Shown here piece by piece: positions 251 to 63,999 of a DNA stretch of 64,000 nt. Source of the DNA: Bugula neritina (Eukaryota > Animalia > Bryozoa); contig OZ037769.1 in assembly GCA_964035545.1 (NCBI GenBank), forward strand, positions 3,701,929 to 3,765,928. The letters are read 5' to 3'. The position numbers were made by a program, and so were the translations under genes. How positions within the stretch are numbered: position 1 is the stretch's first letter; each line of letters begins with the position of its first letter. The notes below the pieces were generated by a model. That model saw nothing but the letters and a program-made list of their open reading frames with translations. It did no database searches and was not told the origin of the DNA.

Positions 251-420
251 ATTACTTATACGCCGGTCTACAAGATGGATATCGCTGTTATTGTGGGAAA
301 TCCTATGGTTCATACGGAGAGGTGAATCAGTACAGGTGCAGTTCTGTCTGCTCTGCTGATGGCATGGAATGTGGTGGATTTTACGCCAACTCTGTTTACA
401 GAACTAACTATTATGGCTAA
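251..420 (+). CDS. g0: terminal exon (second half of a WSC domain) of a paralog starting upstream of the window
   Basis: AG acceptor at 249-250, then phase-1 exon DYLYAGLQDGYRCYCGKSYGSYGEVNQYRCSSVCSADGMECGGFYANSVYRTNYYG-TAA. Shows the WSC pattern AGL-x4-CxCG...C-x3-C...CGG and is homologous to exon 5 of g2-g5. Confidence 0.8.
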
Positions 421-2182
421 AGACTTTATAGTACTAACTCTTTTCTACTCTGAGTGTTTTAAACTAATAACTTGAAGTATTTGTTTTTATTTCAACAAAT
501 AGTTTTAATTTAAGTTATGCAAAATGATAATTGATCTGCTTTTCCCACTGTTATGGGATTGCTATAAATTACAATCCAACTTCAGTTGTTATATTTTTAT
601 ATTTTCTTGTTTATAATTTGTGATAGATAATTATATTATTAGAAATATTTCGTTCGAACGGCATTTATCCAAAAGGTAGTATATAGCCTTATATAACTGT
701 AATAAACTTTTTAAAACTAAGCTGAAAGTTTCTTGCTTATCAAATAAAAGTTTGCAAATTTATGAAAACAGTCAATTCAATAAGGTTTTTCAAGACCACA
801 CTCTGTATAAACTATAACACACGCATACTGGATAACAACCTCTACTTTATGTTAAAATAAAGATGCTAATCACCGTCAACTATAGTGAAAAATAACAGTA
901 AAAGGCAGATCACAATTGCACTTATACTGAAATTATTATTTTACACTCTATATATAATACTGCCAACAAATCATGCATTATAGATATGTATATAAATACT
1001 GTACTTTACAAAGTTGTCAAAACTAATAAAAACTCTCCGAAAGTCTCACTAAATGTATTATAAGAATTCTTGAGATTCCAATTTAGTTCCTTGCGTCTGT
1101 ATATAATTTGATTCTGTAAATGTCAGCTGAGTATCAAATTGTACAGCTTGTTGAGATAAAATCGATTGTTTGTAAGCTTCTTTAAATAGATTCATTAGAT
1201 ATTCTACACTAAACCTGAACTTGTAATATTATTCGTTTTCTTTCATGAATTGCAGCTTTTGTATTAAATCGATGTATGAAATGCTTTGTGTTTTGAGCTG
1301 TTCAATAACTATATAACCTCAGCTCATGTAACTGTATTCTTATTACAAGGCGTGGTTTATATTGTTTTCCAGTTATAATTTGGCAGCTCAAAACGCTAAA
1401 AGCACTAAATTGTTTAGAGTTAAGTAGGTGGGAACATTATTTACTCGTTTAGTTACAGCACAGCAAACCTATAAGTACTAAATTTTTGAAAAGAGCGGAA
1501 TAAACTAACAAGTCATTATCAAAAAAAGGTGGGTTTATTTCACACTTTAGTAAGATTATAGTCTGTGTTATAAGCTTCAGTGAATTATTTGATAGCATTA
1601 TATATAATGTTTAGACTTTAGAGTATAAAAACAGGTTCTTAATTATACATGTTTTGTCTATCTGAATATTGACAAGGATAATCTAGTACCATATATGCAA
1701 TTGTGTACACATTGGTTGCTTTCAGTGCATATTATTTACATTTACATTTACATTTATATGTTAGTTTTATGTGCTTTGGTTTAGAATGTTTAGTGGATAG
1801 GGATTGTTTTAAAAACTGCAAATAAGTGTTAGAAGAAGGGAATTTCTAAAACTGCAAATGCTGGATTCTTATTTGCACCAGAACCTAAATTGAACAATAC
1901 TTTATAAAACATGACAGCATAATAGATTACAATAAGATGCATACATAATATAGGCCTACTTTGAAAGTTCGGGGTTGGAACCATCTTCAAAATTTCAAAA
2001 GCAGGGTTTGCTTTGGTAAAAACAAGTTTTGAAAAACCAAAAGCAACTAAACGTAAACTGCAATTGAAGTACATAGTAGCAGTTTACTGAAATAATATTT
2101 GCATATAATTTACTAAAACTTTTACTGAAAATGAAAAATATTCGTATACGTTATATAAGTCCCACAAAGGTCTGAATGAGAA

Positions 2183-4104
2183 ATGGAAAATCAAAGAAAT
2201 AAACGTGCTCAGGGTTCAGGAGAGACAAAGCTTGGTCAACCTGCACAATGTTCATCTCTGTATGAACTGCAACAATCTTCAGGGAACCAACAACATTTTG
2301 CAGATCAACAAAGATATACCCTTCCACCTGGCTATACCCCTCAAACACAGCCTCCACCTGGATCTGTTCAACAAGGATATTCTGCACAACCACTTGCTTA
2401 TGGTTATACCACTGGCCAGCAGGTGATTGTTCAGGCACCACCGCCTCTGCCAGTCGTAAGTTTATTTATATTATCCAGTGAATGCATACTTACTCAATTT
2501 TTGTTTCTATTTTTCGGTTTTTGTTTTTATATAATGATATCCTTGAGCTAACCAAATATAAATATAATCATTTAAAAATAACAAAAGAAAACTAATAATT
2601 ATGAATAGCAGTCTTACTATAAAATCTAATTGATAAACAATCCTAATATATGAATGTCTTGTAGAACGTGAAGAGTGTTTGATGCATAGGCTGTTCTATA
2701 TATACAGTTCCAATTTAGGAAAAGCTCAGGTTATAGTTGCTATCACTATGAGAATCCCGTCTTTTATTCAACTTCTGCACAAAAGCAATTATGACTAAAC
2801 GCTCTTTTTTACTCAACCACTGACCTCTTGTTTATACTAAGACAGTGCTCAAACCACTAAACTATGGCTGTTTAACGCAGTTGCATTTAGAAGTTACAAT
2901 AATAATAAATCTCAATACAAAATAATAGTCACCATCACTTCTCTGCAGGCTCTTATAATTAAAGAATTGTTCATATTTAGTTCAAAGATAGATTGGATAA
3001 GGTACACATTAATATTGAAATCTAAATTGAAGAAATTGCTTATCTGCAGGTAACAGAAACAAGCTCACAACTTTGGCTGGTTGTTGGAATTCTGACGGCC
3101 ATATTTCTTTGTCTGCCACTGGGAGTTGCTGGTGCTGTCCTGGCAAGTGTATCTGGTAAAGAGGCTCGACGGGGAAATCTTCTTGCCTACAACAGGAAAC
3201 TCTATCATTCTAAAGTTTTCACACTCATAGGGCTAGGAATTGGGTTGGCGATATATGTTATAGTTATTCTAATTAGAGTTTTGGTAGGTAGCTGTTTGCA
3301 TATTTTTTCCCCATATAAGGAAAGTTTGTTTAACTTTTACATATATAACTTTAAGAATCAACCTAACATTTATTACTTTGAATACAGAGAGAAATACAAA
3401 CATCTATATTGATATATCTTTATAACTTCTTTAGAAAGTGGATTTATTATTACTTAGAAGACCTGAAAGTTTTGGAGTTCAGATCAGTACAGTTGGCTTA
3501 CAAAATAGTGATATGTGAAAACGTGTGTCTAAATTTGTAGTTGAATGGCATCATTGTATAAAAAAACATTGTACTATAATTTTTTATACATAAGTTTTTA
3601 ATTACTCAAATATTGTATGACATTTATCTTTAAGTTTGATTACGAAAGTTTGGAAAATTTCAAATACTTCAAATTGCAGCATTTAAATTTAAAACTACTT
3701 TTTTAATTTATAGTTTTATAATGTACTGAGAATGAAAAAAAAATTGTAATAAAATATATAAACACAATAAATTTAGCAAAATAATTAGAGGAACTTCTTT
3801 TGCTGAATAATACAATTTGATTGAATTGAAATAAGTTTATATAGCTGAAAATAGGACATATTGCCTACAGTTGCTTTGTTCAAATGTTGTAGAAACTTCC
3901 ATGGCTGCATCTATACTACTGGTAGTGGCTATGAGTTTTACGGAAGCTCTAATTATTGATTATCATATGGATCGAGTTAGAGCAGTACAAATAAAGTTTT
4001 TTTGCTCTGCGGATGAAATGGAATGGGGACAATTTCAAACCAACTCTATTTTTACAGAGCAAACTACATTGGCTAAAAGTTTTATAATACTAACACTATT
4101 TTAA
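2183..4104 (+). CDS. g1: Pro/Gln-rich + CD225/dispanin protein; WSC region deleted or degenerate (possibly a pseudogene)
   Basis: Exon 1 2183-2455 (GTAAGT donor). Exon 2 3050-3283 encodes VTETSSQLWLVVGILTAIFLCLPLGVAGAVLASVSGKEARRGNLLAYNRKLYHSKVFTLIGLGIGLAIYVIVILIRVL. Uncertain last exon from the CAG acceptor at 3870 runs into a WSC remnant (CSADEMEWGQFQTNS) and stops at 4104. Confidence 0.65.
2750..2870 (-). mobile_element. Degenerate partial copy of the Meta-like tRNA-SINE in g1 intron 1
   Basis: gcaattatgactaaacgctc...ccactgacctcttg resembles 6143-6190. Boundaries approximate. Confidence 0.45.
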
Positions 4105-11786: not shown

Positions 11787-11908
11787 GGTTAGCACACCTG
11801 CTTGCAAGCCTGAGGTCTTTGAATCTAATCCTGGTAAGGAAAATTGTTCTGCATTGTCAAAAACACTGATGAAGTATTTGCATATTTCGTAGTTACTCCG
11901 GTGGCACA

Positions 11909-14900
11909 ATGGCTGAAGCACAGCCTGGGAGAAACATACCAACTCAGGTATTAAACTCCCGGCTTGGTCAACCTCCACAAAATGAACATCTGTACCAACC
12001 ACTATCTACAGAGCGCCTGCAGTTCTCACTTCAACAAAAATATGTTTCTTCATATGCATATTATATTTCTTATACACAATCGCGAACTGAATATGGCTCT
12101 CATACACAACTACCACCACCTGAATATGCCTCCTGTACACAGCAACCACCTGAGAATGCTCAACAAGAAAATTCTGCAGAACCATCTGCTTATGAGTTCG
12201 TCACTGGCTGGCAGATGGGTGTTCAGGACTCACGGCCTCGACCAGCTGTATGTTTATTATCTCATCCAGTGACTAAACTCTCAGTTAAAGTTCTTTTTAA
12301 TTATTCTTGATTTTATATAATAATTTATACTTGAGCTAACTAAATGCAAATATATTTATGTCATCAAATTACTAAATATACTCATACCATTATGATAAAA
12401 ATTTTATTATAATGCATGTTTTATATGAATGTTTTATACACAATACAAAATATACTTGATGAGCTAATTTTTTAAGCAGTTTTAGAAGTTACGATGCATG
12501 GCATTCAATTTTAATAGAGCAGTTTAATACCACAGCTTAATACCTGCTTATACTTAGTTCAGATACAAGTTCACTGAAATACAATAATAAAGTCTAAAGT
12601 TAAATAAATTTTTTTAGGTAAAAGACACAAGTTCAAAACGCTGGATGATTGTTGGGATTCTAACAACCATATTTTTTGCTCCTCTTTCTGCATTAGGAAT
12701 TATGGGTGCTATCAGGGCCTTCGAGGCCGGTAATGAAGCCAAAAGGGGAAATGTTGCTGAATACAGAAAAAAAATTTATAAATCTAAAACGCTTTCACTG
12801 ACAGGAATAGGACTGGGGTTGCTGCTCATTACAATCATTACAGCAGCAGAAGTAGGTGGTGCTGTTTATTATCTTTTTTGAAATAATGAAAATTTGTTTA
12901 AATTTGACATAATTCTGACATTAACCTACATATTTAGTACTTTAAATGCAGCAGAAACCCAAAATACGTGACATTTTAGCAATTTTTAAAAACTGAATAA
13001 AGTATTCAAAATGTTATATCTGATAATTTTTTAAAGTTTGTCAAAAAAGTCCCCAATTTAGCACAGTTAGCTAGCGAAAAATGATATTCTAAAAGCTGTG
13101 CTTAATTTTTTCAGCTGGGTATATATCAATGTTATCTTGTTGCATTGTCATACTTGCTAAGTGTTCAACCATACAGAATTTCTTAATTAGTCCTCAACTA
13201 TTGTATGCTCTTTGTCTTTGATATTGACAATAAAATTGTTTTAAAATTTTTTTTGAGTCACATGCAGCATTATTTCATTTAAATTTGAAATTATCTTTTT
13301 ACCCTATACTTTACTACTATACTTTATTGTAGACCTAATCATTAGATTTAACAGAAGCTTTGTAGTAAAATGATAAATAAACTAAAAAATATGGAACAAA
13401 AATCATAACTTTCTATATACTGCATATTGTAAATTTTTCATTAACCAAAAGCAATTTATCTACGTTAGCTAAAACTTTGAGGTAAAATAGTTTTATAGTT
13501 AAAACTGTGACCTGCATGTGTTAGCTGTTAATAATATTTGGTTGTTGTAGCTTTCTAAAAAAAAATCTTCTGGAAGCTCTTCCAATGAATTTAATGTTTC
13601 CACTCCTGGATATACACAAAACCCAGTGTGTAAGTCTACGAATTATTCTCTGTATTTTGTGTGATATTTCAGTACATATGGGTTCAGCACTTTTAATGTA
13701 ATTACTAGTATTTTTTATTTTTTTATAATAGTCCTAAAATGCTCAAACTAAAGTTATTGCATGTATACAGTTTTCTGTTCAATATAGCAAACAAAAATAC
13801 TTATTTTAGTTGATGATTTATAGAAACTTTAGTACTTTAGTAAAATAAAATATACTATAAAAGTTTTTGTTACAGCTTATTTAAATATACAATAATTTTA
13901 CCAACTTGTCAAGTAAAATTTTATTTATATTTGAATAAAAAAATGTTTTTGATTGCATAGAATATAACACATGTTTAACTCTATACTTCTAATTATAATT
14001 TTGAGCAGCCGATCATATTTATCTGGGATGCTTCAATGATAACATACCTAGAGATCTTAATGGTGATGACTACAACTTTGGAGAGGATCTTTCTGTTGAG
14101 AATTGCTCCAACTACTGCTCTGAAAGAGGTGGGTGGTAACCATGGTTTATCGCAATTGATATTTTTCTGTAAGGCAGAGTGTTATATAATACAGTGAGGC
14201 AGCAGATATGACTGAAACTGTTATAATGACTCTGAGAGAAATTAACTTTAGATGTTTTATCTCAAAGATAACTTTTGTCCAAGAACACCAGTTCAATGCA
14301 GTGACAAGAAAACATTCCTTGTGCAATTTCCATTATCTGTACCACCAACTCACTTTCAACAAACATTTTGTAAAAGAACTTTGCTCTGTTTCAAAGTCTG
14401 AATGCATGTAAATACATTATTTATTTACAGTTTTATTATAACTAGAAAATAACTTGTTGTTTAGAGAAAAAAAACTAAGCAACAATTTAAATTAAATGCA
14501 ATCACACTTTGTCTGTGGAATATGTTTGTGGAATGTATTTCAAAACATGTGCACACATTGTGTATGTTTGTTAGGTTACAAATACGCTGGTCTAAAAGAT
14601 GGATTCCTTTGTTCATGTGGGACATCATATGGTTCATATGGAGAGGTGGACCAGGATGAGTGCAATTCTGTCTGTTCTGCTGATGGCATGGAATGTGGTG
14701 GATTTTACAGCAACTCTGTTTACAGAACAAACTACATTGGTTTGTAATTTCACAATAAACACTTAATTTGAAATTATTTGTTATAAACTAAGTTGCTTCT
14801 GAGTTCATAGTACCAGTAGCTTGTTGAGCTCAGCTATGAATTAGCTCAATAGGGTACGCATCAAAGTTACCCTTACTCATGTAGGGTCACTAAAAAGGTT

Positions 14901-15790
14901 TTAAATTGCAGCATAGGATTAGTTTGTTTTGATCTCTAAATTATATATTGCGGTTTCATTATCATCTTCAAACAAGTTTAAATATAAGTTATTTATAGAC
15001 ATTTAGTTTAAAAATCAGAATTGTTTTTAAACTATTCTACTGATCATTTATTAATCTTCTATGACTCAGTGTATATTACCATTTTTCTAACAGAGAAATT
15101 CACTGCTTTCAACGATAAGAAAAAAATAATATAAAAAGTTAGTTTGATAAACAATTGAAACTATCAGGTCTTATCAAAATGAATGCAACTGCATGTAACA
15201 TTTATTTAGGTTGTTTAATGAAGTTGAGCTCGCAGCATCTTCATTTTGATTTTGCAGTGGTTCTTTGAAGTTTTCTAATAATAACAATCTCACATTTGTA
15301 ATGTTTTTCTCTCTCTTCCAAGATTTGGAGCAAAAAGTCAACCCAGCTTCATGTCTAGTCTTAGTTTTAATCAACTGTTCCAGTAGGTTTAAGTATATTT
15401 CATGTTTTGCAGGTTGCTACAAAGACTATCATGAGACATTTGATTATCATATTGATTTACCAGTTGATGAGGTAACTCCAAGTGGTTGCACAAAACACTG
15501 TAAGACTGATGGTGAGTTACCCGATGTATTTCTAACTTTTTTGTTTACCTATATATAAAAGTGTTGAAATAATTTAGAATGAAGGAATTTACTTTTTCAA
15601 AATACTCCGTCTACTTCTTGCAGGATATCGTTTTGCTGGACTTTGGTCTGGAAGGTATTGTTACTGTGGAGATCACTTCGACAGATTCGATGAAGTTCCA
15701 GATGAAGAATGCAAATGGAGGTGTCCTAGTAACTCTCAACTCAGCTGTGGCGGAGCTCTTAGACAATCTGTTTATAACACTTTTAATTAG
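11909..15790 (+). CDS. g2: CD225/dispanin + 2 WSC membrane protein (~400 aa), apparently intact
   Basis: GT-AG exons 11909-12247, 12618-12851 (CD225), 13551-13629 (stalk), 14009-14128 + 14575-14739 (WSC1: YLGCFNDNIPRDL...CSNYCSERGYKYAGL...CGG), 15413-15511 + 15624-15790 (WSC2). Total 1203 nt, open frame, TAG stop. Confidence 0.85.
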
Positions 15791-22800: not shown

Positions 22801-24194
22801 TATTGCGGTTTCACTATCATCTTCAAACAAACAAGTTTAAAAATAAGTTATTATTAGACATGTAGTTTACGAATCAGACCTGTTTTTAAACTATTCTACT
22901 GATCATTTAGTAACTTTCTATGACTCAGTATATTATCATTTTTCTAACAGAGAAAATCGCTACTTCCAATGATCAGAAAAAATTAATATATAAAAAGTTA
23001 GTTTGATAAACAATTAAAACTATCAGGTCTTATCAAGATGAATGCAAATGTAACATTTATTTAGGTTGTTTAATGAAGTTGAGCTCGCAGCATCTTCATT
23101 TTGATTTTGCAGTGGCTCTTTGAAGTTTTCTAATAATAACAATCTCACATTTGTAATGTTTTTCTCTATCTTCCAAGTTTTGGAGCAAAAGGTCAACCCA
23201 GCTTTATGTCTAGTCTTAGTTTTAATCAACTGTTCCAGTAGGTTTAAGTATATCTCATGTTTTGCAGGTTGCTACAAAGACTATCATGAGACATTTGATT
23301 ATCATATTGATTTGCCAGTTGATGAGGTAACTCCAAGTAGTTGCACAAAACACTGTAAGACTGACGGTGAGTTACCCGATGTATTTCTAACTTTTTTGTC
23401 ATTAGGACTTGATTACTGCTTGAAATTTAACTCTGAGCTGTAAAATAATTGCTTCACCGAGATTTGAACCACAGACCTCCAGCTTGCAAGCAGGCACGCT
23501 AACCAATTACACCACAGGGGCTCTGGGATTTCAAACAACAAATAGCTAGGTCACCGAAATAATTTGTTTTTAGATTTATTTTTGTTTTCTTTCAAATTCA
23601 ATTATAGTTCTGCGCCAAATAAATATAAATGAAAACTTCAAATTCAAGAGCTTGAAATAAAAAAATTTAAAAGATAGAAATGCCAATTAGCTTTAAAGTA
23701 TTAAATTATTATAGCTACAGTTTTAATAGCATTTTCTCAGTTAGTAAAATAAAACAAAGCACTAAATGGTCACATTTGTTACCTATATAACTTTTGGTAT
23801 ACAACTGGTTAAAAAATGTTGATAAATACTTCATGGTGTAATTGACATAATAATATAACTGCTCATTATTCAAACGATTATAATAATTACAATATTAGTT
23901 GACACTTGGCATTTAAAAATTTACTAATACCTGTTATATCAATTCAGTTTACCGATATATAAAAGTGTTGAAATAATTTAAAATGAAGGAATTTACTTTT
24001 TCAAAATACTCCGTCTATTTCTTGCAGGATATCGTTTTGCTGGACTTTGGTCTGGAAGGTATTGTTACTGTGGAGATCACTTCGACAAATTCGATGAAGT
24101 TCCAGATGAAGAATGCAAATGGAGGTGTCCTAGTAACTCTCAACTCAGCTGTGGCGGAGCTCTTAGACAATCTGTTTATAACACTTTTAATTAG
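19869..24194 (+). pseudogene. g3: CD225 + 2 WSC paralog with nonsense codon at end of exon 1
   Basis: Exons 19869-20327 (TGA at 20319-20321 where g2/g4 have CGA), 20679-20912, 21582-21660, 22042-22161, 22427-22591 (CGG motif changed to CSE), 23268-23366, 24028-24194. All other exons are open. Confidence 0.75.
23446..23541 (-). mobile_element. tRNA-derived short element in g3 intron 6
   Basis: Minus strand GCCCCTGTGGTGTAATTGGTTAGCGTGCCTGCTTGCAAGCTGGAGGTCTGTGGTTCAAATC; related to 44296-44405. Confidence 0.7.
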
Positions 24195-46290: not shown

Positions 46291-46322
<32 letters not shown>

Positions 46323-46512
46323 CTAAGTATTCTGTCTATTTCTTGCAGGATATCTTCTTTCTGGACTCGGGTCTGGGAGGTATTGTTACTGTGGAAATTA
46401 CTTCTACGGATTTGTAAGGTCGAATGATGAATGCAGTTCGGGGTGTCCTGTTGACTCTCAACTCAGCTGTGGGGGACCTCTTCGACAATCTGTTTATAAA
46501 ACTTTTATCTAA
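40967..46512 (+). CDS. g5: CD225 + 2 WSC membrane protein (~490 aa) with expanded PPxY repeats and long Ser/Thr/Glu stalk
   Basis: Exons 40967-41512, 41882-42106, 43365-43518, 44116-44235, 44797-44961, 45626-45724, 46349-46512. Total 1473 nt, open frame, TAA stop. Confidence 0.85.
41130..41421 (+). repeat. Coding 27-bp minisatellite (P-P-P-E/G-Y-A-P-H-T-Q-type units, about 10)
   Basis: CCACCACCTG(A/G)ATATGCCCCTCATACACAG-type units in g5 exon 1. Shorter array at about 20031-20235 in g3. Unit length is approximate. Confidence 0.85.
42685..42870 (-). mobile_element. Meta-like tRNA-SINE in g5 intron 2
   Basis: caggagcaattaggactggatactcttcttaacatcacc...ggcttgaaccc matches the other copies. Confidence 0.65.
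42956..43328. mobile_element. MITE / non-autonomous DNA transposon with ~150-bp inverted arms
   Basis: About 42963-43110 (CACTGAAAATCTCCAGTTTTTAGCTA...CAAGGTTC) is the imperfect reverse complement of about 43180-43324 (GAACCTTG...TAGCTAAAAACTAGAGATTTCCAGTG). Absent from g2-g4 intron 2. Confidence 0.8.
43533..43754 (-). mobile_element. Meta-like tRNA-SINE inserted at the g5 exon 3 donor
   Basis: Minus strand shows A-box-like GGTCTAGGGGTTAGAGCG, B-box-like GGTTTGAGCCC and TGGTGATGTTAGGAAGAGCATCCAG. Imperfect flanking duplication GTAAGTATAAAACT / GTAAATATACAACT. Confidence 0.7.
44296..44405 (-). mobile_element. tRNA(Thr-TGT)-like short element in g5 intron 4
   Basis: GCCCCTGTAGCGCAATTGGTTAGGGCGCCTGCTTGTAAGCCGGAGGTCTGTGGTTCGAACCCCAGTGCGGGGGCA: acceptor stem pairs, anticodon arm is defective. 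Absent in the g2/g4 intron. Confidence 0.7.
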
Positions 46513-47991
46513 AAATATGTTAGTAAAACTATATACCTGCTTTGGCTATCTGTGAAAGAACAGTGAAAATATAGATATTATAAGTGTATACTTATACAAA
46601 TCATGTGCTTTGTTCAATTCTGCTAGAGTTATTAAAAGCTCAGAAAAAGTTTAAAAGCAAGTGTTAAATAATGAAAATGTTGAAGGATTATATGTTTTTC
46701 TCCTTTCTATAATAACATATTTTGAAATTTATAAAATGTTAACTTGAATTAAAACATTCAACTCTGAAGACTTTTAGTAAACTGAAAGTAATTGAATAGC
46801 CAACACCCATGCATGCATGCAGTGTCATCTTCAAAAAGACTAATTTATTTATAATTTTATTTTTAGTGTAGTACATCTAGGCACCAAGGTATAGTTACTC
46901 AGGTGATACATAGGTGCTAACATTACCTTTTCTAATAGAGATCTTTGTCAGTTTCAAGTATAAATTATTTTGTTTCTTCCAAATATTGTTATGCATTTGC
47001 TTTACACATTATGTTTAGCATTAATTCAAAATATTTTACTTTTATATATACCGCAGAAACACTTAATATTGCATAACTGTTTATAAACCTTATAACATTT
47101 CATTAACCTTTATTGTATATAATTATATGCACTTGTGTTTTTTGTAAGAAGTCGTGCCTGAATTTCTTTTTATTCTGCATTTTCTGTATCTCTTATATGG
47201 CTGCATTGTCATAAAATATTTGTTAATTAAAAAACATAATATATGTACAAATGAAAAATTATCTGCTCTTTCTAAATTAGAAACAGCAGCATCATGCAGT
47301 GTTGCTGATTAGAAAGCTGTTTTAAAATGTAAACAACTTTATTTTGACTACAAGGTAGTTGACATTATAGTTTAGTAACAGCTAGTACAGCTAGGGCTAC
47401 ATATATTATATCACTGCGTGAATAGGTTTTCATTGTAAGTATTATATTGAGTATTGATCTCTGGAATTTTTAATTCACAAAAAGATCCAATTGCATTATC
47501 AACAGTTTGTGAACAAAGGCAGTAATATATAACAACCTAGTGTGGTTGCATTGAGGCAGTATAGGAGGGTTTATTCAACTAGTTGAAGTTAAGAAACAGG
47601 CTCCATCAGAGTAAGTACTTTTATATCCTATTTTATTTTTAGTTAACTCTAGTAATTGCTAACTACTTTGACTTCCAAATTTGAAGTATGTTTCAAGTTG
47701 AAGCTTTTAGCATATTTCACAACCTTGTTGTTCCAAAGATATCAATATAAAACTGTGGAATATGCAACAAAGAAAATGTAGACTAGTTATTTAGTTAAAG
47801 GATTTAGATTTTATTCATAATGCATAAAATTGCCGTTCATTATAATACAAAGTGTACAAATGAACATGAATCTGATTCCCTTATAATTGTAGATCCTGCA
47901 TTGTAAACATTTTTGGATTCCCATACAACCACTTTATAATGTTTCAAGCGAGTGTAATTTTTGATCATTTTTAATTTCAGTTAAGTCAAGC

Positions 47992-50900
47992 ATGGCTTCA
48001 AGACTGAGCCCTGTTGAGACACCCGAGGTCCCGGAACTTTCTGAGAAAGAAAAGCTGTCACTGTCTCTGAATCGTCTCCCACCCATAAACAGTTCCCAGC
48101 AAACTAACCCAACACTGTTCCTTGCTCAGCCAGTGGCCACTCAACAAGCCAACGGCCAGCCAGCTTACATCCTACAGCCAAATGGCCAATTGGAGTATAT
48201 GTTACAAGCCAATGGCCAATCAGCTAATGGTCAGCCGGGTACATCTAATGTTTTACAAGGCCAACAAGTTTTTGCTACAACATCCTTTACCGGAGAAATG
48301 ACTCAGCAGTCCGTCTACATTCTCAGACCTCAGCCATTGTCAGCCGTATGTTGTATACCAATGAAGTCAGCGGTGTATATATATTAGTAAAGTCAGCAGT
48401 GTATATATATTAGTAAAGTCAGCAGTGTATATATTAGTAAAGTCAGCAGTGTATATATATTAGTAAAGTCAGCAGTGTATATATTAGTAAAGTCAACAGT
48501 ATATATATTAGTAAAGTCAGCAGTGTATATATTAGTAAAGTCAGCAGTATATATATTAGTAAAGTCAGCAGTATATATATTAGTAAAGTCAGCAGTGTAT
48601 ATATTAGTAAAGTCAGCAGTATATATATATTAGTAAAGTCAGCAGTGTATATATTAGTAAAGTCAGCAGTATATATTAGTAAAGTCAGCAGTGTATATAT
48701 TAGTAAAGTCAGCAGTGTATATATATATTAGTAAAGTCAGCAGTGTATATATTAGTAAAGTCAGCAGTGTATATATATATTAGTAAAGTCAGCAGTGTAT
48801 ATATTAGTAAAGTCAGCAGTGTATATATATATTAGTAAAGTCAGCAGTGTATATATTAGTAAAGTCAGCAGTGTATATATATATTAGTAAAGTCAGCAGT
48901 GTATATATTAGTAAAGTCAGCAGTGTATATATATATTAGTAAAGTCAGCAGTGTATATATTAGTAAAGTCAGCAGTGTATATATATATTAGTAAAGTCAG
49001 CAGTGTATATATTAGTAAAGTCAGCAGTGTATATATATATTAGTAAAGTCAGCAGTGTATATATTAGTAAAGTCAGCAGTGTATATATATTAGTAAAGTC
49101 AGCAGTGTATATATATTAGTAAAGTCAGCAGTATATATATTAGTAAAGCCAGGAGCATTAAGTATTAGTAGAGTAAGTTGTATGTTACACATTCATAGAG
49201 TATCAGGAGGTTATATATTTGTAAAGTCAGCGACTAACAATAGACTATTAGTCAGCTGCATGGTGACAATTACATATTCCTATAGTTTGAAGTTGGTAAT
49301 ACTGTACTTTTGGTAGAATAGTCAGTTATAGTTAATGTGTTATTGTAGCAATATGGTAGTTGCACTTTAGTTAATGTAAAGCCAGTGATATTGTGTTTTA
49401 GTTCTGTCACATTGGAAATTGTAATAACTTGATAAACAGAATCATTTACATTATTATACTTGAAAGATGGTTTCTTTTAACTAGTAATTTAGCAGTTCAA
49501 CTAAAAAAATCTTCATGTGTTCCCACAGCTACAGTGTTCACTGTAGCAATAATTCTTTTTAATTATAAGTTGTTAATATTGTGTTATATATGTGTTAGAT
49601 GATGTCTGCCACAATAACACTGGGTGTGGTGATTCCTATCTGCATGCATTTCTGTTTTATAAGTCGAATCAAACAAAGCCAATCAATCGAATAGTAGCTA
49701 GAATAACTTTTTTATTTTTATAAAGCATGCATACCATGACATTTGAAAACATCCTAATCACTTTAATTGAAATGATGATTTTTAAACAATGTTTGTATAG
49801 TAACGCAGTCATCGTCACATTTTATATATTGGTTATGTGTTTGTAGTCTGAACACGCTGCCTCTAAGACCTGGGTTATTGTTGGCATCCTATCAACCATC
49901 TTCTGCTGCTTTCCCCTGGGACTTGCCGGTACTATTATAGCTCACATGTCTAGGGAAGATGCTGCTAGAGGTGATGCCGGCAATCACAGACGTAGACTGT
50001 GTCAGGCTAAAGCTCTCACGGGGACGGCTATTGGAATTGGGTGTTTGGCCCTCATTGCCTTAGCAGTTAGTGTGAGTAGCAAATTTATCAGTAGGAGTTG
50101 AGTATTTGTTATTTCATATAATTACGCTATGATATACAATTAAGGGTGCTTTTGAATTCCCTAAGCGTATCGAATCCGAAAGCGCCTTTAATGAAACAGA
50201 TAACCATTATATAGAATAAACAACCACATTTATATTGTATTCAAGTTATTACCCTAGTTGTGTAATAACATTATGACAGTTGTTTTCTTTAATAAATACG
50301 CAATACTAAAAAATCATGTTAACTTTTCTAACTTATCTTCAGTTTTACATTTACTAGACTGAAAAATGTTCACATTTCTTTTGTAGCTTGGACTAATTTT
50401 TGGACTACTTCACAACCAGGGAAATGATTATGAGTATGAACCCATTCCTAGTTTTACCTGGACAGGTTAAGAATTTAATTACAATGCATTATAAGGCTTC
50501 TACAGGTTAATAGCTAAACATAGCAAAATGCTGATTACATTTTAGCTTGCCGAAACATAAAATTTTTAACTTGAGAACCTACTAATGTCTAAGAATCAAT
50601 AGAGAAGAATATTTTGTTTATCTTTCTTTACTGTCTGTCTCTCTTTGTGTTTGTCTGTCTGTATTTATGTCTGTCTGTTGTCTTTATGTCTCAATATTTT
50701 GCATGTCATTAGTCCCATATCATGAAACCAGCTCACCAACTAACTTCGCAACCATTGGGCTGATTAAATACATGTACGTATATAGATGACAGTGTGGGCC
50801 AGTTTCTGTACAATTGTTTCCTAGGTGTTTGTGGTCAAACCTCACTTTTTAAAGGCAGCAATACTTTGTAGATAAGGGAATCTACCTAGGTTGCTATGAA

Positions 50901-53900
50901 GATGATCAGTTTCACAGAGATGTTTCTGGTATTAACACGGAGTTTGAAGACGATAATGATGTTGATAAATGTGTCTATTACTGTGCATCACATGGTACGT
51001 TGACATTTTAAACTTTATAGCAGTCGGCAACCTTTTGCTTTACAACTACATAAATATATACACTAAGTTTAATGGTCCAAAAATCTGTTTAAGAGTTAAG
51101 TGTTTGCTATTATCGTCATGGTAACCGGCAGTTTATTGTACAAAGACAACAGCTGTTACTATAACACATTACACTATTCTTTAAAATGTTTAATTAGTTT
51201 TAAAAAGATTAGTATACATTAATGTACATAAAGTAAAACTTAGGTTTCTGTTTTGATGCAAATAAAACTCAGTGTTTATGCTAATGAAAATATGTATTTT
51301 ATATATTGAAATTTGGTTGAATTGCCAATGCTGCTTCACTTACTATATGTAGAGCACGTTGAAAGAATAAAAGAGTTCTTATATTTAATTTCTTATTTAT
51401 AACTATGTAACCAGTTTTGACAGCTATAAAAATATCTGATAATATTATTAATAGGTACAAAAATATAATTTTTAGCTGTTGCATTTGTCAGTTTATTTAC
51501 AGAAAGTTTTTGGAGATGAGATCAATTGATTTTTAGTAAAAATGTCTATCATATTCTACCAAAGTATATTTTGTCTAATTTGACTTCCTTTATTGACTTT
51601 TTAAATGAATTCTAGTCCCTTGTTATTATGATGTTAGATTTCCACTACAACATGTTTATGCCTGCATAATAATACAATGAAAAAATGTTACAACATCTAC
51701 AATAAACATTGTAATTTGTACACATAACTATTTAGCTATTATATATTTATTAATACAATCAGCACACCTATATATAGTGTGATAGTTATATTCATATAAC
51801 TACATCAATAGAATTATCACATAGACAACATAATTGATACAATAATAATATATAATCTGTGCAATGCATAACTATATAAGTATTATATTTATTAGTATAA
51901 TTGAAATTACAGGCTACAAGTATGCTGGACTACAGGACTACTCTAAATGCTACTGTGGTAACTCGTACGGCAGCAATGGGAAGGCATCTGAAGACTCCTG
52001 TTACGCAACTTGCCCAGGAAATGCGGACGAAATTTGTGGTGGTTACTTGAAAAACTCCCTTTACCGGACTAACTTCATCGGTGAATATATGAATCTATAA
52101 AACGCATATCTTTCCTTTTCATCTTTTAAAGTATTTATATTTTCAATTCAAAATGAATAATATATACCTTTTACGGTGTGAATTAAAGTGATGAAACTTT
52201 GCTTCGTGAGATTTTAAAAATGTTCGACATGTGACAAACGTTTTGTAATACTCTAACTATACTGTTTAGATAAAAAATTTCGCCTGACTAATGTTCTATG
52301 TCCTGAAACTATTGTAGGGTGCTTTTTTGATGACGATAAAAGATCTTTGAAGGAATATTCATATGTGATAACATCCGGTGATGAGCTGAAGGATTGTGTA
52401 GAAACATGTGGCTATGAAGGTTAGAGCTTGATTGAGCTTGAGTTTGGGAATGGCTTTTGATTCTGCTCTATTTACCAATAGAAATTTATATTTTTTATTG
52501 GCTTTTAAAAAAACACTGTTTAACGAAATTTGTGCTATTGCATAAAGGGACACATAAACCTTTCCCTTATAAATTTATACTCAAACTCAAGACTTAACAC
52601 ATTCAAAAGCTATATTAATTGTTTAGGTTATGAATTTGCTGGTTTGCAAGATTCTAACAAGTGTTATTGTGGACAAGATCCCAACAGATATGGGGAGGCC
52701 CTTGCAACTGAATGTAATACATCGTGTGCAGGAAATCCCGAGTTAACGTGTGGTGGCACCTATAGGAACTCAGTCTACAAAACCTCCACCATTGGTCAGT
52801 AACTATCAATATGTCAATTTATTTCTTTACAATACTAGTTATGCATAAGATTATTATTTGCCCATTTTTATTTTTGTGATTTTGAACATTTAAATCATTG
52901 AAAGCAAGTTTGTTGTACTTTAAGTTTTTTAAAAATTTAAAACTTGACAAGAAACTTTTGCTAAGCTCTGAAACTATATCTGCCTCCAGCAACTTATATA
53001 TCATTTTAGCTATGAATTAGCTGAAGTTTCTAAAAAATAATAAAACTTATTCAAATTTGTCTTTTTCTGGTATTGTTGTAATGTTGACGTGTACCAAGAA
53101 TTTTTTTATAGAACTCAACTCAACTTTTAATACTTAATTAAATGGCTATTTATTTGTTTAGACACATATTTTGATTTCTAGCCTACTCAGGGGGACACAA
53201 CTTAGGTTGTTATACTGATAAGCCTAGTGACAGAGATTTGACTGGGTACTACATATACCTACCAAATAACAACAGCGTCAATCACTGTAATGATATCTGC
53301 TCTGCCCGTGGTAAAGTACTTATAAACTTTAAACTCCAAATATAGACTTAGTTTTCACAAATACAATGCAAATCTTGTAGCTAAACATTCATAATATGCA
53401 ACAAAACTAACAAACCATATCGTTTACAGGCTTTCAGTATTCCGGTGTCCAAGGCAGCAATGAGTGCTTCTGCTCAAGAAATTATGGCAGTCACGGCATC
53501 GTCCTTGAATCTTACTGTAACATTAGCTGCTCTCTCTATACATGGCAGAAATGTGGAGGAAATGTGAGAAATAGGGTGGCTAGAACCAACTACTTGGGTA
53601 ATGTGCTTCAATATTCTTCCTCGTGTAATCGATACTTACGTATAATAATAAGTGACTTATAAATTACATACTATTTCATGTTGAACCAAATGTTTGAAAA
53701 TGAAATAATTGGAAAAGATGAAATTAAAAGATGCAATTTTAGACTTGACTTTTGTCTTATTAAATTTGAGATTTACAGTACATGTGTGGTTAATTTTGTT
53801 GTGTCATGTTATTATTAGGTATACGTTTTCAGAAATCAAACTATAAAAACTTTTGAACAAATCAAATGCCTCTGAATAAATTATTCCTTTACTATTCAAC

Positions 53901-55415
53901 AGTGCAACGGGTCTTGTATAAATTTGACACCAATGATCATAGTCATATAAGCTCAACAGCGTTTATTGAAAAAAAGCCTTTAGAGACTTTTAGTTACTAT
54001 ATATGCTTATCTGGAATATATTGACATAATTTCTCTTTGCTTTAGTAAACCTATAATGCAGTATATTAATATACAGTATTTCTTTTAGCAAGTTTTCTGT
54101 AAACAATTTAATTAATTCCTTTTACAACATTTTTTTAGGTTGCTTTGAAGATAACCTTTCTCACAGAGCTTTGAATTAATCTGTATTACTGGACAGAGGC
54201 TTTCTCCCTGATGACTGCCGGCTAGCTTGTGAAAATCAAGGTAAATTATCAGATGTCTCAGAGTCTGATATTACCATAAAGTATGTTCCTGCTCCAAAGT
54301 TCAATAAATAGTAGCATGTGCACTAAGTATAGCAGCATGTGCACTAAACAGTAGCATGTTCACTGAATAGTAGCACGTGCACTAAATGATAGCATGTGCA
54401 CTAAATAGTAGCATGTGCACTAAATTATATAGCATGTGCACTAAACACTAGCATGTGCACTAAACAGTAGCATGTGCACTAAATAGTAGCATGTGCACTA
54501 AATAATAGCATGTGCACTAAATAATAGCATGTGCACTAAATATAGCAGCATGTGCACTAAATATAGTAGCATGTGCACTAAATAGTAGCATGTGCACTAA
54601 ATAGTAGCATGTGCACTACACAGTAGCATGTGCACTAAATAGTAGCATGTGCACTAAATGATATAGCATGTGCACTAAACACTAGCATGTGCACTAAACA
54701 GTAGCATGTGCACTAAATAGTAGCATGTGCACTAAATAATAGCATGTGCACTAAATAATAGCATGTGCACTAAATATAGCAGCATGTGCACTAAATAGTA
54801 CCATGTGCACTAAATAGCAGTATGTGCACTAAATATAGTAGCATGTGCACTAAATAGTACCATGTGCACTAAATGATAGCATGTGCACTAAACAGTAGCA
54901 TGTGCACTAAATAGTAGCATGTGCACTAAATAGTAGCATGTGCACTAAATAGTGTCATGTGCACTAAATATAGTGTCATGTGCACTAAACGAAAATGAAA
55001 ACACTTGGTTTTTATTTATAGCTCATAAAAAGAATTTTCAATGCTCATATATAAAAATGATTTGTGAAATTTTATTAGCTTTCATGGTAACTTTATTTTT
55101 AAATTATAAAAAATTTATAAATTAAATTTTAGATAAGTTCATTAAAAATAGTATTAACATGAAAAAGTTGGCTTGTTTGGCTTAATAATTAGTATTAACC
55201 AATTGGAACACTCTATCTGACATTGTTGTGCAGGTTATTTCTTTGCTGGGATACAGAATGGAGACCAGTGCTACTGTGGATATGATGTTAACAGGTACAA
55301 ACAGATAGATGATGCAAAGTGTGACGTACCCTGTATTGGTGACTCTGACATCATGTGTGGAGGTTATCTTAGAAACTCTGTATACAAAACATTTATACCT
55401 GAAATAGTTTATTAA
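47992..55415 (+). CDS. g6: CD225/dispanin + 4 WSC cassettes; premature TAA in WSC4 (~518 aa product with 3 WSC)
   Basis: Exons 47992-48345, 49847-50071 (WVIVGILSTIFCCFPLGLAGTIIAHMSREDAARGDAGNHRRRLCQAKALTGTAIGIG, the most canonical CD225 here), 50387-50465, 50872-50994, 51913-52080, 52318-52419, 52627-52794, 53182-53310, 53430-53597, 54139-54240 (TAA 54177-54179), 55234-55415. Probable 5'UTR exon ending at 47610 (GTAAGT) spliced to the acceptor at 47980. Confidence 0.85.
48364..49148. repeat. Intronic minisatellite TAGTAAAGTCAGCAGTG(TA)n, 24-28 bp, about 30 units
   Basis: Directly visible tandem array in the first coding intron of g6. Confidence 0.95.
54310..54988. repeat. Intronic minisatellite AGCATGTGCACTAAATAGT, 19-21 bp, about 35 units
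   Basis: Directly visible tandem array in the last intron of g6. Confidence 0.95.
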
Positions 55416-57777: not shown

Positions 57778-60700
57778 ATGACCTCATCACCAACCACCGC
57801 AGCAGACCATAAGATGATGCGGAAACTTCCACCTATTGATAGTCTACCTGCCCAAAATGGTGGGCCTCTTTATTCATCTAATGAGCTGACAAATAACAAT
57901 CAAGATCAAACAGTTGCCATGGCAACAACTTCCTTCTCGGCCCAAGCAGTGCACTCAGAGCCTCTATATGTTCAAGCAACTTCATGTCAGCCAATATCGA
58001 AGGTTTGCCCATTTAATATATGTGTGGCGTGTGGCGTGTGCGTATGCGTGTGTATAAATATATTAAAAGTTTGATTTGGGAGTCAACATTTTATACAAAA
58101 CATGGTTTGTTTTCAGGCTGAAGAGTCGGAATCTCTCACTTGGATCTTGGTCGGATCACTTGTGGCTGTAGCCTGTTTCCTTCCACTTGGTCTCCCAGGT
58201 GCTATCTGTGCTTGTGTAGCTAAAGGAGATGCTAAGAAAGGCAATGCTGCTGGTTTTAGAAGAAAGTTACAAACAGCTAAGATACTTTCAAGCGCTGCTA
58301 TTTGTTTTGGAGTAGCTGGCATCATTGCAGCTGGAGCATCGGTATAATTATTTAGCGTACCAAAACTATATCGTAGTCATAGTGCACTGTTCAATAATTA
58401 TTTTAGCAATGATGCAGCTATTATATATTTTTGAAAATATCGCAATTATGACAATATTATAAAAAAAAATTCAAAAATGAAATTATGTTATATATTAATT
58501 TATTGATATTAAAACAAAATTCAAGTATGTGAAGCTCCTTAATATTTGAAAAATAACAAAGTTTAGCCAAACCTTTATATTTCATAAAACTAAAGAATGT
58601 TTATACCTGAATCTACAGCTCGAAATTATTTTCTCACTAGAAGTCATTAAGTCTACCAATAATAAGTTTAGAGATATTTGGGTGTTGCAACCACAGTCAC
58701 ATTACCATACTCATGTTCTCTACAACAACATTCATCCTTGACCTTTCCAATTATCTGTGTCAGCTGACATAATTGTATTGATGCAAGGAATGTTGATGTT
58801 ATGATGTTTCAGCTAGGATTGATATTTGCCTTTATTGCTAGAATTAACAAGGAACCAACCACTGACTATTACTATGAGGAGCCTCTACAGTGGAGAGGTA
58901 AGTTGGAGTTTATTTCATTATCATAATAAATTTATATGAAGAAACAGAGCTAATTGCTGACTTTGTTTATTTTATTTACTAAATGTAAATTTCTTAGAAA
59001 TTTTAGAAATACTTTCTATAAATTGTGTTGCTTCTATGCAAGTTTTGTAAAAAGAATCTTGTGATTATGCAACTTTCATCTTTCAACTTTCTGCATAAGA
59101 CAAATAAGAAAAACTAATTTTTTTGGCATAAAGATTAGGTTTTGAGTTGAAAGAAATAGAATGACTATATTATAGGAGTAGAATGTTGATCCTTTTCGAA
59201 TGATTTTATTACCTTCTGCTTCTTCTTGCAACTATTAGGAAACCTGCAGGCTGATTGGCCATTCCAAAATTTTATAATAAAGATTTATTACAATATTCAA
59301 GTTATACCTGCTGTCTTAAAACTGCTAGCCATTGAAATAACCAACTATATTCATACAGTGATTCAGCATTTTTTCATAAATTTTGTCATCCAAAGTTGCA
59401 TCAATTTCAACATCTTACAAATAGGTAAGGCATTTTGTTAAGGAACAGCTTGACAAAATGACAGTTGAATACATGCAGTATAGTAACTTCCTAAAGCAGC
59501 AAAGTGAAATTTATTAGTTATTATTTTAGATGAAGGAATATACATGGGCTGCTATGCAGATAATATGACTGACAGAGATATCTCTGGTGTTTATATAAAG
59601 TTTGAAGCTGACAATGAGGTTTCAAAATGCACCAATTTCTGTGCTTCAAGAAGTATGTAAAACAAATTTTTGTATTTCAAATACATCAATTTTAGAGCTT
59701 TTTAACATCAATGATATATATAAATAAATATACAATATAATAAATATATATACGATGATAAATATATAATATAATAAATATATAATATAAATGAACATAT
59801 GATATAATGAATATATAATATAATAGATATATAATATAATAAGTATATAATATAATAGATATATAATATAATAAGTATATAATATAATAAATATATAACA
59901 TAACAAATATATAACATAATTAATATATAATATAATGAATATATAATATAAATAAAGATATAATACAATAAATATATGACATAATAAATATAATATAACA
60001 TAATAAATATGTAATATAATAAATATATAATATAATACATATATGATATAACAAACATAAATTATAATGAATAATATGATAAATATATAATATAATAAAG
60101 ATGATGTATATATTTGTATCTGTAGAATACAAGTATGCAGGCTTGCAAGATGCTGTCTACTGTTACTGTGGTAACTCCTTTGGGAAGTACGGCAAGGTTG
60201 ATGAGAGTAACTGTACCACTAGTTGCCCCTCAATTGACTACTATAAGTGTGGGGGATATCTTAGTAACTTAGTCTACAGAACCAACTATTTGGGTGAGTG
60301 TTTTAATGAGTCCAGCGTAATTGTAGCTATGTAAATATAAACTCAATCAAAAGAGTAGTTTAATGAAACATATTATATATAGTCTTTCATGTTCTATAGT
60401 TTCAAAAGTCAAGCAGAAATGTTAGTATTTTTTTGATTTAAATATGAAGTAAAAATTAGCATCGTGTAGAAGTTACTGTACAATTAAATTTTGTACCTGC
60501 ATTTAATTTTAAACAATATACGAACATTTACCTAGTATTTAAATGTATATGTGTGCATATCTGTATATGAGTGTGTATATGTGCATGTGCGTATAATTAT
60601 ATGTGTGTATATGTGTGTATGTATATATATATGTGTGTGTATATATGCGTATATTATATATGTGTGTGAATATGCATGTGCATGTGCGTGTGTGTATATA

Positions 60701-63700
60701 CATATATGCATGCATATACATACAAGTATATGCGTGTATATATGTATATATATGCGTGTGTACATACGAGTATATAATACACGTATGCAGTACATGCACT
60801 GTATGTATATAATAACTACATAGGTTGTTTCAATGATGATGCAGACAGAGCGTTGACAGGATATTCATACACCATGACACTTACTGCATCTCCAAACATT
60901 TGCACAGAAACTTGCAATGCTGAGGGTAATCTTTGTATTTTTGAATACACTTCTTATATTTTATTGTAAAATAAACCAAAGAAATTAACCAAAAAAAATT
61001 AATGTTACCAAAATTTAAAAAGAAATAGTTTATTATGATCAAATTGATTTCAGTTTTTAAGCTATTAAACACTGCATAACTTTTTAAAATAATGTTACAA
61101 TACTTGTTTTTCGTTTTGGAAGAGAAAACCAAAATGCTAATTGATATATAAATATATTATCATTATGAATTATTTTAATAAGGTTTTGATTTTGCTGGAA
61201 TCCAGAACTCTGATGAGTGTTACTGCGGAAACGATTTCAACAGATATGGTGAAGCGCTTACTTCCGAGTGTAGCAGTCTATGTTTCAACAACTCTGAAGG
61301 GCTCACATGTGGCGGAACATATAAAAACTCTGTTTATAAAACACATGTATTCCGTAAGCAATAATCAACGCCATTGTGTCTTTCACTGAGCCTAAATTTA
61401 ACTTATAGAATAATTTTTTAAATTAGATTGAAAATGATGCAAATTAATTATTAGCATTGATGACATATTATAGCAGTTTTTCTATTACTGCTTCTTTTAT
61501 AGAAGAATCAATCAATTTATTCCAAGAAAAATTTTGTTTCAGGTTATGGAAGATTCATTCTTCTTAGTTGCTTTAAAGATGAAGAAAGTGATCGAGATCT
61601 TACAGGCTATTTTGTTGACTTGGGATCAGAAAATAGTATCAGCTATTGCAGTGACATTTGTGCTTCACCGGTACAGATTTACTTTTTTTTTGCATTTGAA
61701 GAAGTCATATGAAATTATTTTATAGTTCAAGTCCTTGTGAAAATGTGTTATATGCTTCTAATTATTTTTTTGACCATATATTATGGTCAAAAAATACATA
61801 AAAATGTATAATGTTGCTTTGATTATTGTCCTAATGGCATGCACCTCATAATGCCCTTTGTAAGATTTCTACCAAATTGATATATAAAAGTGTTTTTATT
61901 TAGTAAATAAAGGTATCATAACAGCTTCTTATATCATTATCTTTCATCGTAATTGACTAATTGATATTTTTGATTTTACAAACAAAGCAAATTAGATTTA
62001 TACTAACTTATATTTTTGTGTTGTAAATAATTTTTGGTGTAGTTATAGCAAATGATAAGCTAACATTTAAAAACCTACAAGGATTTTTTATATTTTAGAT
62101 AAAACTATTATATGTGAAAAGAAAATGGTCAATTTGTTACAGTTTTCACTCTTCTTTAGGATTTCAGTATTCAGCCATGCAGAACGGTGCGGAATGTTAC
62201 TGCTCCAGGGATTATGGCCGACACGGTAGTGTTCCAATGGATGAGTGCAATGTGAAGTGTCCCAGTAACCAGTAGAGTGATTGTGGAGGGGTTTTGAGGA
62301 ATTCAGTCTACAGAACAGCCTACATAGGTATGACTCATACGTCTCAACACTGAAGAGAAACAGGAAACTTTACACCATGCTTCAGTTTGGCAAGAGATTA
62401 CTTACCAGTTATTAATATGTTGCACTTCTTTATACTGACTAATGCCCATTTCAAAATAATGTACATCTTTTCAGTGTTTTTCAATGAAAGTTGTGTACAG
62501 TGCAAAGTTAGCATAGGTATTTCATTGACAGTGTTACTGAAAATTATCATCAACTTTCTGTAAAGGATTTCAATAGTTTTTTACACATCCATTTGAGCAT
62601 TTGTTTAATTTTTTAGGGTGCTTTATGGACGATGCGGACAACAGGGCTCTGAACTATTCAGCTTCATTCAACTCTAGTGTTACTTTACTCTCTTGTGCCG
62701 TCAAGTGTATGGAGAAAGGTTAGTGTGTTTGCCCAAACCTGGGCCTACTACTTTTAGCCTTATTATATATAAAATCACTAATGACTTTTTATACTAAAGA
62801 TGGGATTCATGGAAACATTTTGACATTTTTTCAATTTTAAAATAGCACCCATATAACTCAAAATTTCTGCTATAAATTTTCTATGGGCCAATAATTAAAT
62901 TATTGCTCAGTAATCCATATATGATAAAATTGATGCAGGGTATGCTATTGCATGTTTGTGCTTTTAATTAAGTGCAAATATACTTATACTTAGTATTCAT
63001 TTGATTAAATATTACACATAATTTAAGTGATAAGTGAAAAATTTATATTTAATGAGTTGAATTTTGTTGTAAATGCTCATAAAATTAAGTAAATGGCAAT
63101 GTTATTCATTTAAAGGGATACTAGCGGTAGAGCTGCTTTAGAATTTATCTGGTTGTTTTGAGATTGCTATTTTGAACAACAAAAATAATATGAAAGTGTA
63201 AAGGAACAGGAATCAACTACATTTGCAAACTGGAGTAAATATGGTCTACATGTATTGGGTGACAACTCCCTAATGTTGTGGAGTTGTCATTCTATAGCAT
63301 TGGTAAGATTGAATTTGCTGTAATTGAGATCTAAGATACATCTTTATAAATTGTCTTTTACAAAGTGATCCAAGGGTTGAAAAATGCAAAACGATCAGCG
63401 ATCCGAAATAGTTTATCCGCAGTGTAAATTAATTTTGCCCCCACTGCAATAGGAATCGAACCCGAGACCTCTGGCTTGCAAGCAAGTGTGCTAACCATTA
63501 CACCACGGAGACCACTGGGTAAACTCAACACTACATGCAAAATTTGTTGCTTTCATATATTATAGTTTATAATACAGCAAACTGTAACAATTAACTGTCA
63601 AACACTATATTTAAAAATTAATACAAGTATTTGCATATTGAAGTAATTGGTTTTTGGAAGAATTGTGATAAAATTTATAATTGCCTATCAAATTATTTTG

Positions 63701-63999
63701 TTACGATATGAAATAATAAAAAATGCTTCGAAAGTACGATAAAATCACTTTATCATTTGTATAGTTGTACTTTTTGCTTAAATAATTTATAATGTAAACA
63801 AACCTTAACATACTATTTTATGAAGCATTTCAAATAGAGAAGACAACTCTAATAATTCTCATATAAAATTAACACCTGTGTACAGGTTATTTCTTTACCG
63901 GGATACAAAATGGAGACAAGTGCTACTGTGGATATGATGTTAACAGGTACAGACAGGTGGCTGATGAAGAGTGTGACATACCCTGTATTGGTGACTCAG
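57778..63999 (+). CDS. g7: CD225 + 4 WSC cassettes; WSC3 disrupted; runs off the window end
   Basis: Exons 57778-58002, 58117-58341 (CD225), 58813-58897, 59530-59652, 60126-60293, 60824-60925, 61183-61353, 61543-61670 (1 nt short versus g6), 62160-62327 (TAG 62273-62275), 62617-62718, 63886-end. Confidence 0.8.
59712..60098. repeat. Low-complexity ATATA-rich intronic repeat
   Basis: Almost pure A/T degenerate (ATATA)n. Confidence 0.85.
60543..60810. repeat. Degenerate (TG/TA/CA)n alternating purine-pyrimidine tract
   Basis: Visible in g7 intron 5. Confidence 0.85.
63420..63535 (-). mobile_element. tRNA-derived short element in the last visible intron of g7
   Basis: Minus strand TGTAGTGTTGAGTTTACCCAGT-GGTCTCCGTGGTGTAATGGTTAGCAC...GAGGTCTCGGGTTCGATTCC, with good A and B boxes. 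Confidence 0.75.

Follow-up and report, generated by a model that had tools for sequence, protein, structure and literature searches.

Two groups of described proteins stand closest to the genes considered here. Kremen1/2 are type I membrane proteins that combine a signal peptide, a kringle, one WSC domain and a CUB domain, and WSCD1/2 are type II; in WSCD1/2, as in the xylosyltransferase oxt, the fungal WSC lectins (WSC3) and yeast Wsc1, WSC domains often stand in tandem and lie on the luminal or outer side. The second group is the dispanin/CD225 family (IFITM3, PRRT1/2, TUSC5; PF04505), with two hydrophobic segments, a basic loop, a G-D or G-N motif, Cys in helix 1, a long Pro/Gln-rich N-terminus carrying PPxY motifs, and tandem clustering. 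In the type II proteins IFITM3 and PRRT2 the N-terminus is cytosolic and the C-terminus is luminal or outside the cell (PMC7665892), and listed dispanin features include a short C-terminus, an intron in the loop, an A-x6-A motif and the loop G-D (PMC3282796). Here we analyze a window of 64,000 nucleotides (the whole stretch of DNA examined) from the bryozoan Bugula neritina (assembly GCA_964035545.1, contig OZ037769.1, hereafter C5; C5:3701929-3765928 within a 216-Mb genome), which holds a tandem cluster of genes joining a CD225 domain to WSC domains. The sequence evidence confirms that this CD225-WSC fusion family is real and under selection. We give a probability of about 0.5 to the reading that its members are lineage-expanded type II membrane capture receptors, whose PPxY-rich tails would drive uptake of a ligand, most likely a glycan, bound by the WSC array.

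Eight co-oriented units (g1-g8 in our numbering; g7 is the g6 of the original prediction) were found in window positions 251-64000, as that prediction had stated: the tail of g1, a truncated g2, g3-g6, g7 and g8 (Table 1). The models of g3-g6 have 7 exons and two WSC domains each, and those of g7 and g8 have 11 exons and four. Exon 1, which encodes the N-terminal tail, is followed across a phase-0 intron by a CD225 exon of 225-234 nt, across another phase-0 intron by a stalk exon, and across a phase-1 intron by paired phase-1 exons, each pair encoding one WSC domain. Introns of all models are GT-AG and in phase, with the exception of the g8 exon-8 donor in the present assembly. The earlier claim that the exons splice in frame into CD225-WSC fusions held for part of the array. 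WSC domains are carried by g1 and g3-g8; in g2 the stalk and WSC exons are gone, apart from a decayed WSC remnant at ~3963-4128. The reading frame is open in g3, g5 and g6, and stops or an out-of-phase donor affect g4, g7 and g8 in the present assembly: a TGA (20319-20321) lies near the end of g4 exon 1, whose frame is open only with an in-frame donor after 20294; g7 has a TAA (54177-54179) within WSC4, in this assembly only; and g8 has the out-of-phase exon-8 donor (61670) and a TAG (62273-62275).

An iterated local hidden Markov model (HMM) run over 323 kb recovered 22 CD225 exons in two C5 clusters, 19 at C5:3.60-3.82 Mb on both strands and three at C5:229-275 kb; the array predicted within the window belongs to a family that reaches far outside it. 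A same-strand WSC exon lies no more than 2.6 kb downstream of 19 of the 22, compared to none upstream and one on the other strand, which indicates that the adjacency is not due to chance. All 22 exons end in a GT donor at the identical aligned position. In 19 copies we could assign a stalk exon that leads from phase 0 to phase 1, and 13 of these stalk exons end in Trp-x immediately ahead of WSC1; the number of WSC domains per gene ranges from one to at least nine. Among public B. neritina proteins, predicted by AUGUSTUS with transcriptome hints on the independent assembly GCA_010799875.2 (PMC7576161), KAF6029935.1 (CD225 at 37.5 bits), KAF6022027.1 and KAF6041684.1 have CD225 and WSC joined and both over the Pfam cut-off, and KAF6029932.1 joins them with CD225 under it; the stalk exon of KAF6041684.1 is the same as that of g8. 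The earlier statement that the fusion is hidden from annotation has to be corrected, since these automatic models already carry both Pfam domains. It is very improbable that small CD225 genes simply neighbor separate WSC genes and were joined only by predictors. No transcript joining the two was seen, and some public models end after the CD225 or stalk exon (P0055, P0056), but 19 copies, distributed over both strands and two clusters, have the same fixed order, and the donor position is shared by every copy. Moreover, the stalk exon supplies the change from phase 0 to the phase-1 acceptor with which the first WSC exons start, and read-through beyond the CD225 donor is unconserved (1-42 aa).

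The copies of g7 and g8 in the independent assembly show a synonymous distance of 12-22% and conserved splice sites. Between assemblies, the ratio of nonsynonymous to synonymous change (dN/dS) of g7/g8 is 0.15 for CD225 (p 1e-6), 0.17 for WSC (p 2e-25) and 0.24 for exon 1; the stalk value of 0.32 is not significant. Purifying selection acts on g7 and g8, in their exons as well as their splice sites. The g7 TAA, the g8 TAG and the g8 out-of-phase donor are all absent from GCA_010799875.2, and DNA run X1 likewise has a sense codon at 54177 in g7; these lesions are therefore broken alleles or errors of the present assembly, not fixed losses. No positive selection was found, as dN/dS was below 1 in every comparison made, and the immune role suggested earlier gains no support from selection.

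Domain identity was assessed by scoring the window models exon by exon with Pfam. The g7 CD225 exon (49847-50071), which contains ILSTIFCCFPLG, scores 37.8 bits against a PF04505 cut-off of 27.1, bearing out the identity first proposed for it. Scores are 27.1 bits for g8 and 20-24 bits, under the cut-off, for g2, g3 and g6 (E 6e-5 to 5e-4); the remaining copies, at 20-26 bits, were joined to the g7/g8 group by the iterated local HMM and a tree. PRRT1 (9zks) gives a weak sequence match (E 0.074). The WSC half-exons score 42.8 and 38.3 bits (PF01822), the conserved Cys pattern is present, and the structure model of the domain (predicted local distance difference test, pLDDT, 84) has the WSC fold, with template modeling (TM) scores of 0.82 to Kremen1 and 0.71 to the yeast Wsc1 sensor domain. 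By sequence, too, Kremen1 is the closest solved WSC (E 2e-9). Folding the whole protein from its single sequence gave a poor model (pLDDT 44).

The family shares with dispanins the two hydrophobic segments, basic loop, loop G-D/G-N (G-D in 9 and G-N in 11 of the 22 copies), helix 1 Cys (at least one in 19), Pro/Gln-rich N-terminus with PPxY, and tandem clustering. The dispanin C-C pair of helix 1 occurs in 6 of 22 copies, and g3-g5 have no Cys there. It differs in that its C-terminal part, stalk plus WSC, measures 120 to >900 aa, compared to <10 aa in dispanins. Furthermore, there is no splice site in the loop (CD225 is a single exon in all 22 copies and in Watersipora), A-x6-A is mostly lost, with Tyr, His or Phe at the first position in 21 of 22 copies, and so is GxxxG, being intact in one copy and retaining a small residue in 9. 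As the short C-terminus, loop intron and A-x6-A, three of the features in PMC3282796, all fail, these genes are best called dispanin-derived.

In each window model the first 40 residues are hydrophilic, and two hydrophobic segments flank a K/R-rich loop; an AlphaFold model places helices at 57-89 and 94-131, and in g7 and g8 the second hydrophobic helix spans the exon 2-3 junction into the stalk exon. No signal peptide or C-terminal anchor was found in any window protein model, and most sequons and nearly all Cys lie after the second hydrophobic segment. The lack of a signal peptide agrees with what had been read from the sequence at the outset, and the sequons named then (NVS, NCS, NQT, NTS, NIS) are present. 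Without a signal peptide, the second CD225 helix would offer the only route by which the Cys-rich, sequon-bearing WSC array could reach the lumen, and the type II topology first proposed is thus supported. The first CD225 segment would lie in the cytosolic leaflet, palmitoylated on Cys in most copies, and the second would span the bilayer as a signal-anchor in the manner of IFITM3 and PRRT2; the stalk and the WSC domains, with their disulfide bonds, would then face the cell exterior or an endosomal lumen. Described dispanins are small and have almost nothing outside the cell; a large folded CD225 ectodomain would support the type II topology from evolution.

The N-terminal tails give further clues to function. 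PPxY motifs, which are binding sites for NEDD4-family ligases, occur in 9 of 13 non-redundant tails, compared to 2.6 expected, and none of 2000 shuffles reached this count; exon 1 of g6 alone has ten 10-aa repeats with six PPxY. Together with the type II reading, this enrichment favors capture-and-uptake receptors. The tandem WSC array may hold on to a repetitive ligand through avidity; the likeliest ligand is a glycan borne by microbes, food particles or matrix. Cytosolic PPxY may recruit NEDD4-type ligases that sort receptor and cargo to the endosome-lysosome route. Fungal WSC proteins bind beta-glucan, according to a passage of PMC9252488 that cites Wawra 2019, and elsewhere tandem WSC accompanies carbohydrate-active enzymes (GH16, xylosyltransferase, sulfotransferase, glyoxal oxidase). 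Several observations weigh against this interpretation. The only animal WSC structure found, that of Kremen1, binds proteins (PMC6946704); the tails of g7 and g8 have no PPxY and are not very Pro-rich, which also limits the Pro-rich N-terminus originally ascribed to all units; and g3-g5 have no helix 1 Cys. In addition, the lack of any dN/dS above 1 means that there is no arms-race signal, and no RNA read or transcript contig crosses the CD225-WSC junction, the three sequencing runs, none of them recorded as RNA, having behaved as genomic DNA.

With the same architecture and topology, the WSC domains might instead bind proteins in the manner of Kremen, in adhesion, colony-to-colony recognition or as signaling co-receptors, which we regard as somewhat unlikely. 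The Kremen1 match in sequence and fold favors such a role: Kremen1 binds DKK1, and its WSC contacts a virus capsid protein (PMC6946704). Variable loops and null alleles between individuals would also suit recognition genes. However, tandem WSC is otherwise found with carbohydrate-active enzymes, and kringle and CUB are absent here.

More doubtful is a ligand-targeted restriction or trafficking factor, in which WSC binding would cluster CD225 and so stiffen membranes or block SNARE-driven fusion like IFITM3. The first helix of the window's subfamily is amphipathic at the strength of fish dispanins (moment 0.30-0.45 vs. 0.33-0.44), and the loop G-D/G-N (20 of 22) and helix 1 Cys (19 of 22) are widely kept. 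On the other hand, the GxxxG needed for IFITM3 oligomers (PMC7665892) is almost gone, the SNARE-like central Arg (PMC11730294), of the R-SNARE type, occurs in 4 of 22 copies, and moments in the other copies are 0.05-0.26, with one subfamily at only 0.17-0.26. The losses of GxxxG and Arg make IFITM-type fusion control less likely, and the IFITM-like membrane activity put forward in the original prediction is weakened to that extent. We view with equal doubt a ligand-controlled dispanin, in which a microbial or symbiont glycan on the WSC domains would cluster CD225 and switch on control of membranes or endosome fusion; if true, bryozoans would have immune receptors that combine sensor and effector in one chain, with a repertoire broadened by gene duplication and conversion of exons. 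In any case, a natural family of this kind allows CD225 membrane activity to be tested for control by an outside ligand.

A structural tether or mechanosensor joining the epidermis to cuticle, skeleton or mucus, like yeast Wsc1, is unlikely. The fold match to the Wsc1 sensor domain, the Ser/Thr-rich stalks of g3-g6 and the many other WSC genes in the genome would suit it, but the stalks are short (16-51 aa), and rapid copy turnover with frequent broken alleles would be unusual for structural genes. Capture receptors with putatively glycan-binding WSC arrays remain our preferred reading, and the genes are candidates for a role in recognition in bryozoans, a phylum in which little is known of immunity or of the handling of symbionts.

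Among non-fused proteins, the nearest relatives are short CD225 proteins of two bryozoans, Watersipora subatra (XP_067934123.1, XP_067934107.1) and B. neritina (KAF6026954.1), whose CD225 is 36-46% identical to that of the fusion family. The Watersipora short-tail genes, like the fusion genes, have one phase-0 intron ahead of CD225 and another close to where helix 2 ends. Their exon 3 completes helix 2 and adds an acidic, Tyr-rich tail; an acidic, Tyr-rich exon 3 is common to both groups, but in the short-tail genes it ends in a stop. No WSC exon was found in the ~21 kb surrounding the Watersipora genes, nor on seven related contigs. A quick tree, which left out B. neritina proteins and fragments already known to derive from these same genes, placed 20 of 22 CD225 domains in one group (Shimodaira-Hasegawa-like approximate likelihood ratio test, SH-aLRT, 88) beside the short-tail group (94; both together 91), with two long branches unplaced. 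Because these nearest relatives are three-exon genes lacking WSC, the family probably arose when exon 3, through a phase-1 donor, acquired a WSC cassette of phase 1-1 that later multiplied, and the short-tail sisters show this probable route of origin.

We found no description, in the literature searched, of proteins with both a CD225 and a WSC domain. Word-based protein searches and a HMMER scan with the g7 exon returned the combination only from B. neritina; the sensitivity of the scan is limited, as it missed divergent B. neritina paralogs, and these searches miss distant relatives, so that the combination may occur more widely. No CD225+WSC cluster was found in the ESM Atlas (features and shape; clusters of at least 50 members), a metagenome scan with the fused subfamily, from which records of this genome may have been withheld, gave no matches, and a scan with the Watersipora protein returned short-tail genes only. 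Candidate P0003 proved to be a repeat artefact. The earlier view that no such protein is described has stood up: this is apparently an undescribed arrangement of two known modules, visible in automatic annotations and known so far from one species complex. Kremen1/2 share the WSC fold and a membrane location with the family, but Pfam gives only CD225 and WSC here, with no kringle, CUB, signal peptide or C-terminal helix. The automatic name KREMEN1 of KAF6029935.1 is thus a misannotation, this being a CD225-WSC protein without kringle, CUB or signal peptide. WSCD1/2, oxt, WSC3 and Wsc1 resemble the family in their often tandem, luminal or outer WSC, but the present family has no catalytic domain and is anchored by a CD225 hairpin that carries a PPxY tail.

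Duplicates, truncations, stop alleles and conversion tracts agree with the birth-and-death turnover first suggested for the array. g3 and g5 are a duplicate with 98.5% identity, but across exon 6 and intron 6 they diverge by 12%; between 15000-15620 and 35300-36460 the difference is 7-12% from intron 5 to intron 6, with 8 of 32 residues changed in the first half of WSC2. Since it reaches into introns, it marks a conversion tract rather than positive selection. The last exon is near-identical between g3 and g4, and CD225 and WSC1 distances are discordant between paralog pairs, a pattern pointing to either conversion or unequal crossing-over. The last exon of g7 in the other assembly (L030:7618-7826) resembles that of g8, which suggests conversion between these neighbors. 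We propose that the repertoire is varied by duplication, change in WSC number, truncation and conversion, and that turnover is ongoing.

Table 1. Units of the CD225-WSC cluster (window positions unless marked C5).
Feature	Position	Strand	Details
g1 exon 1, CD225, stalk, first WSC exon	C5:3698862-3701617	+	upstream of window
g1 last exon	251..420	+	C-terminal half of its single WSC; exon model
g2	2183..3283	+	exon 1 2183-2455 (PPGY); CD225 exon 3050-3283
g3	11909..15790	+	open, 400 aa, 2 WSC
g3 exons	11909-12247, 12618-12851 (CD225), 13551-13629 (stalk), 14009-14128, 14575-14739, 15413-15511, 15624-15790	+	
g4	19869..24194	+	2 WSC; CD225 exon 20679-20912, stalk 21582-21660
g5	32290..36627	+	open, 2 WSC; CD225 exon 32999-33232
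g6	40967..46513	+	open, 490 aa, 2 WSC; exon 1 40967-41512, CD225 41882-42106, stalk 43365-43518 (Ser/Thr/Glu-rich)
g7	47992..55415	+	11 exons, 4 WSC; CD225 49847-50071, stalk 50387-50465
g8	57778..64000, continues beyond window end	+	11 exons, 4 WSC; CD225 58117-58341, stalk 58813-58897

A genome-wide PF04505 scan gave 58 CD225 matches, seven of them in the window (at 3077, 12645, 20706, 33026, 41909, 49868 and 58159), with clusters also on C2, C3, C6, C7 and C9. A separate cluster of seven matches at C4:17284419-17308498 probably represents the short-tail sisters. WSC domains have multiplied widely in the B. neritina genome, and large WSC arrays with no nearby CD225 match lie at C3:15.15-15.90 Mb, C4:23.06-23.12 Mb and C8:5.81-5.89 Mb. 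Near the window, L014:300-9700 and L017-L018 (C5:3785-3795 kb and 3823-3827 kb) hold WSC exon pairs of another kind, each with a Val-Val-Pro-Lys-Cys stretch at its end and untied to a CD225 exon; they may form a gene of their own, with several domains, within the cluster.

The window also contains a long terminal repeat (LTR) retrotransposon at 7053-11794, Ty3/Gypsy-like by eye, with LTRs at 7053-7290 and 11557-11794 that are 93% alike and a coding region broken up into many short open reading frames. A second, partly deleted copy (27968-32175) arrived with the g3/g5 duplication, and both copies interrupt a short tRNA-like repeat. Intronic tandem arrays lie at 48364-49152 (24/52-bp units), 54305-54989 (19-bp) and 59714-60099 (16-bp), the first of which is also present in the other assembly.

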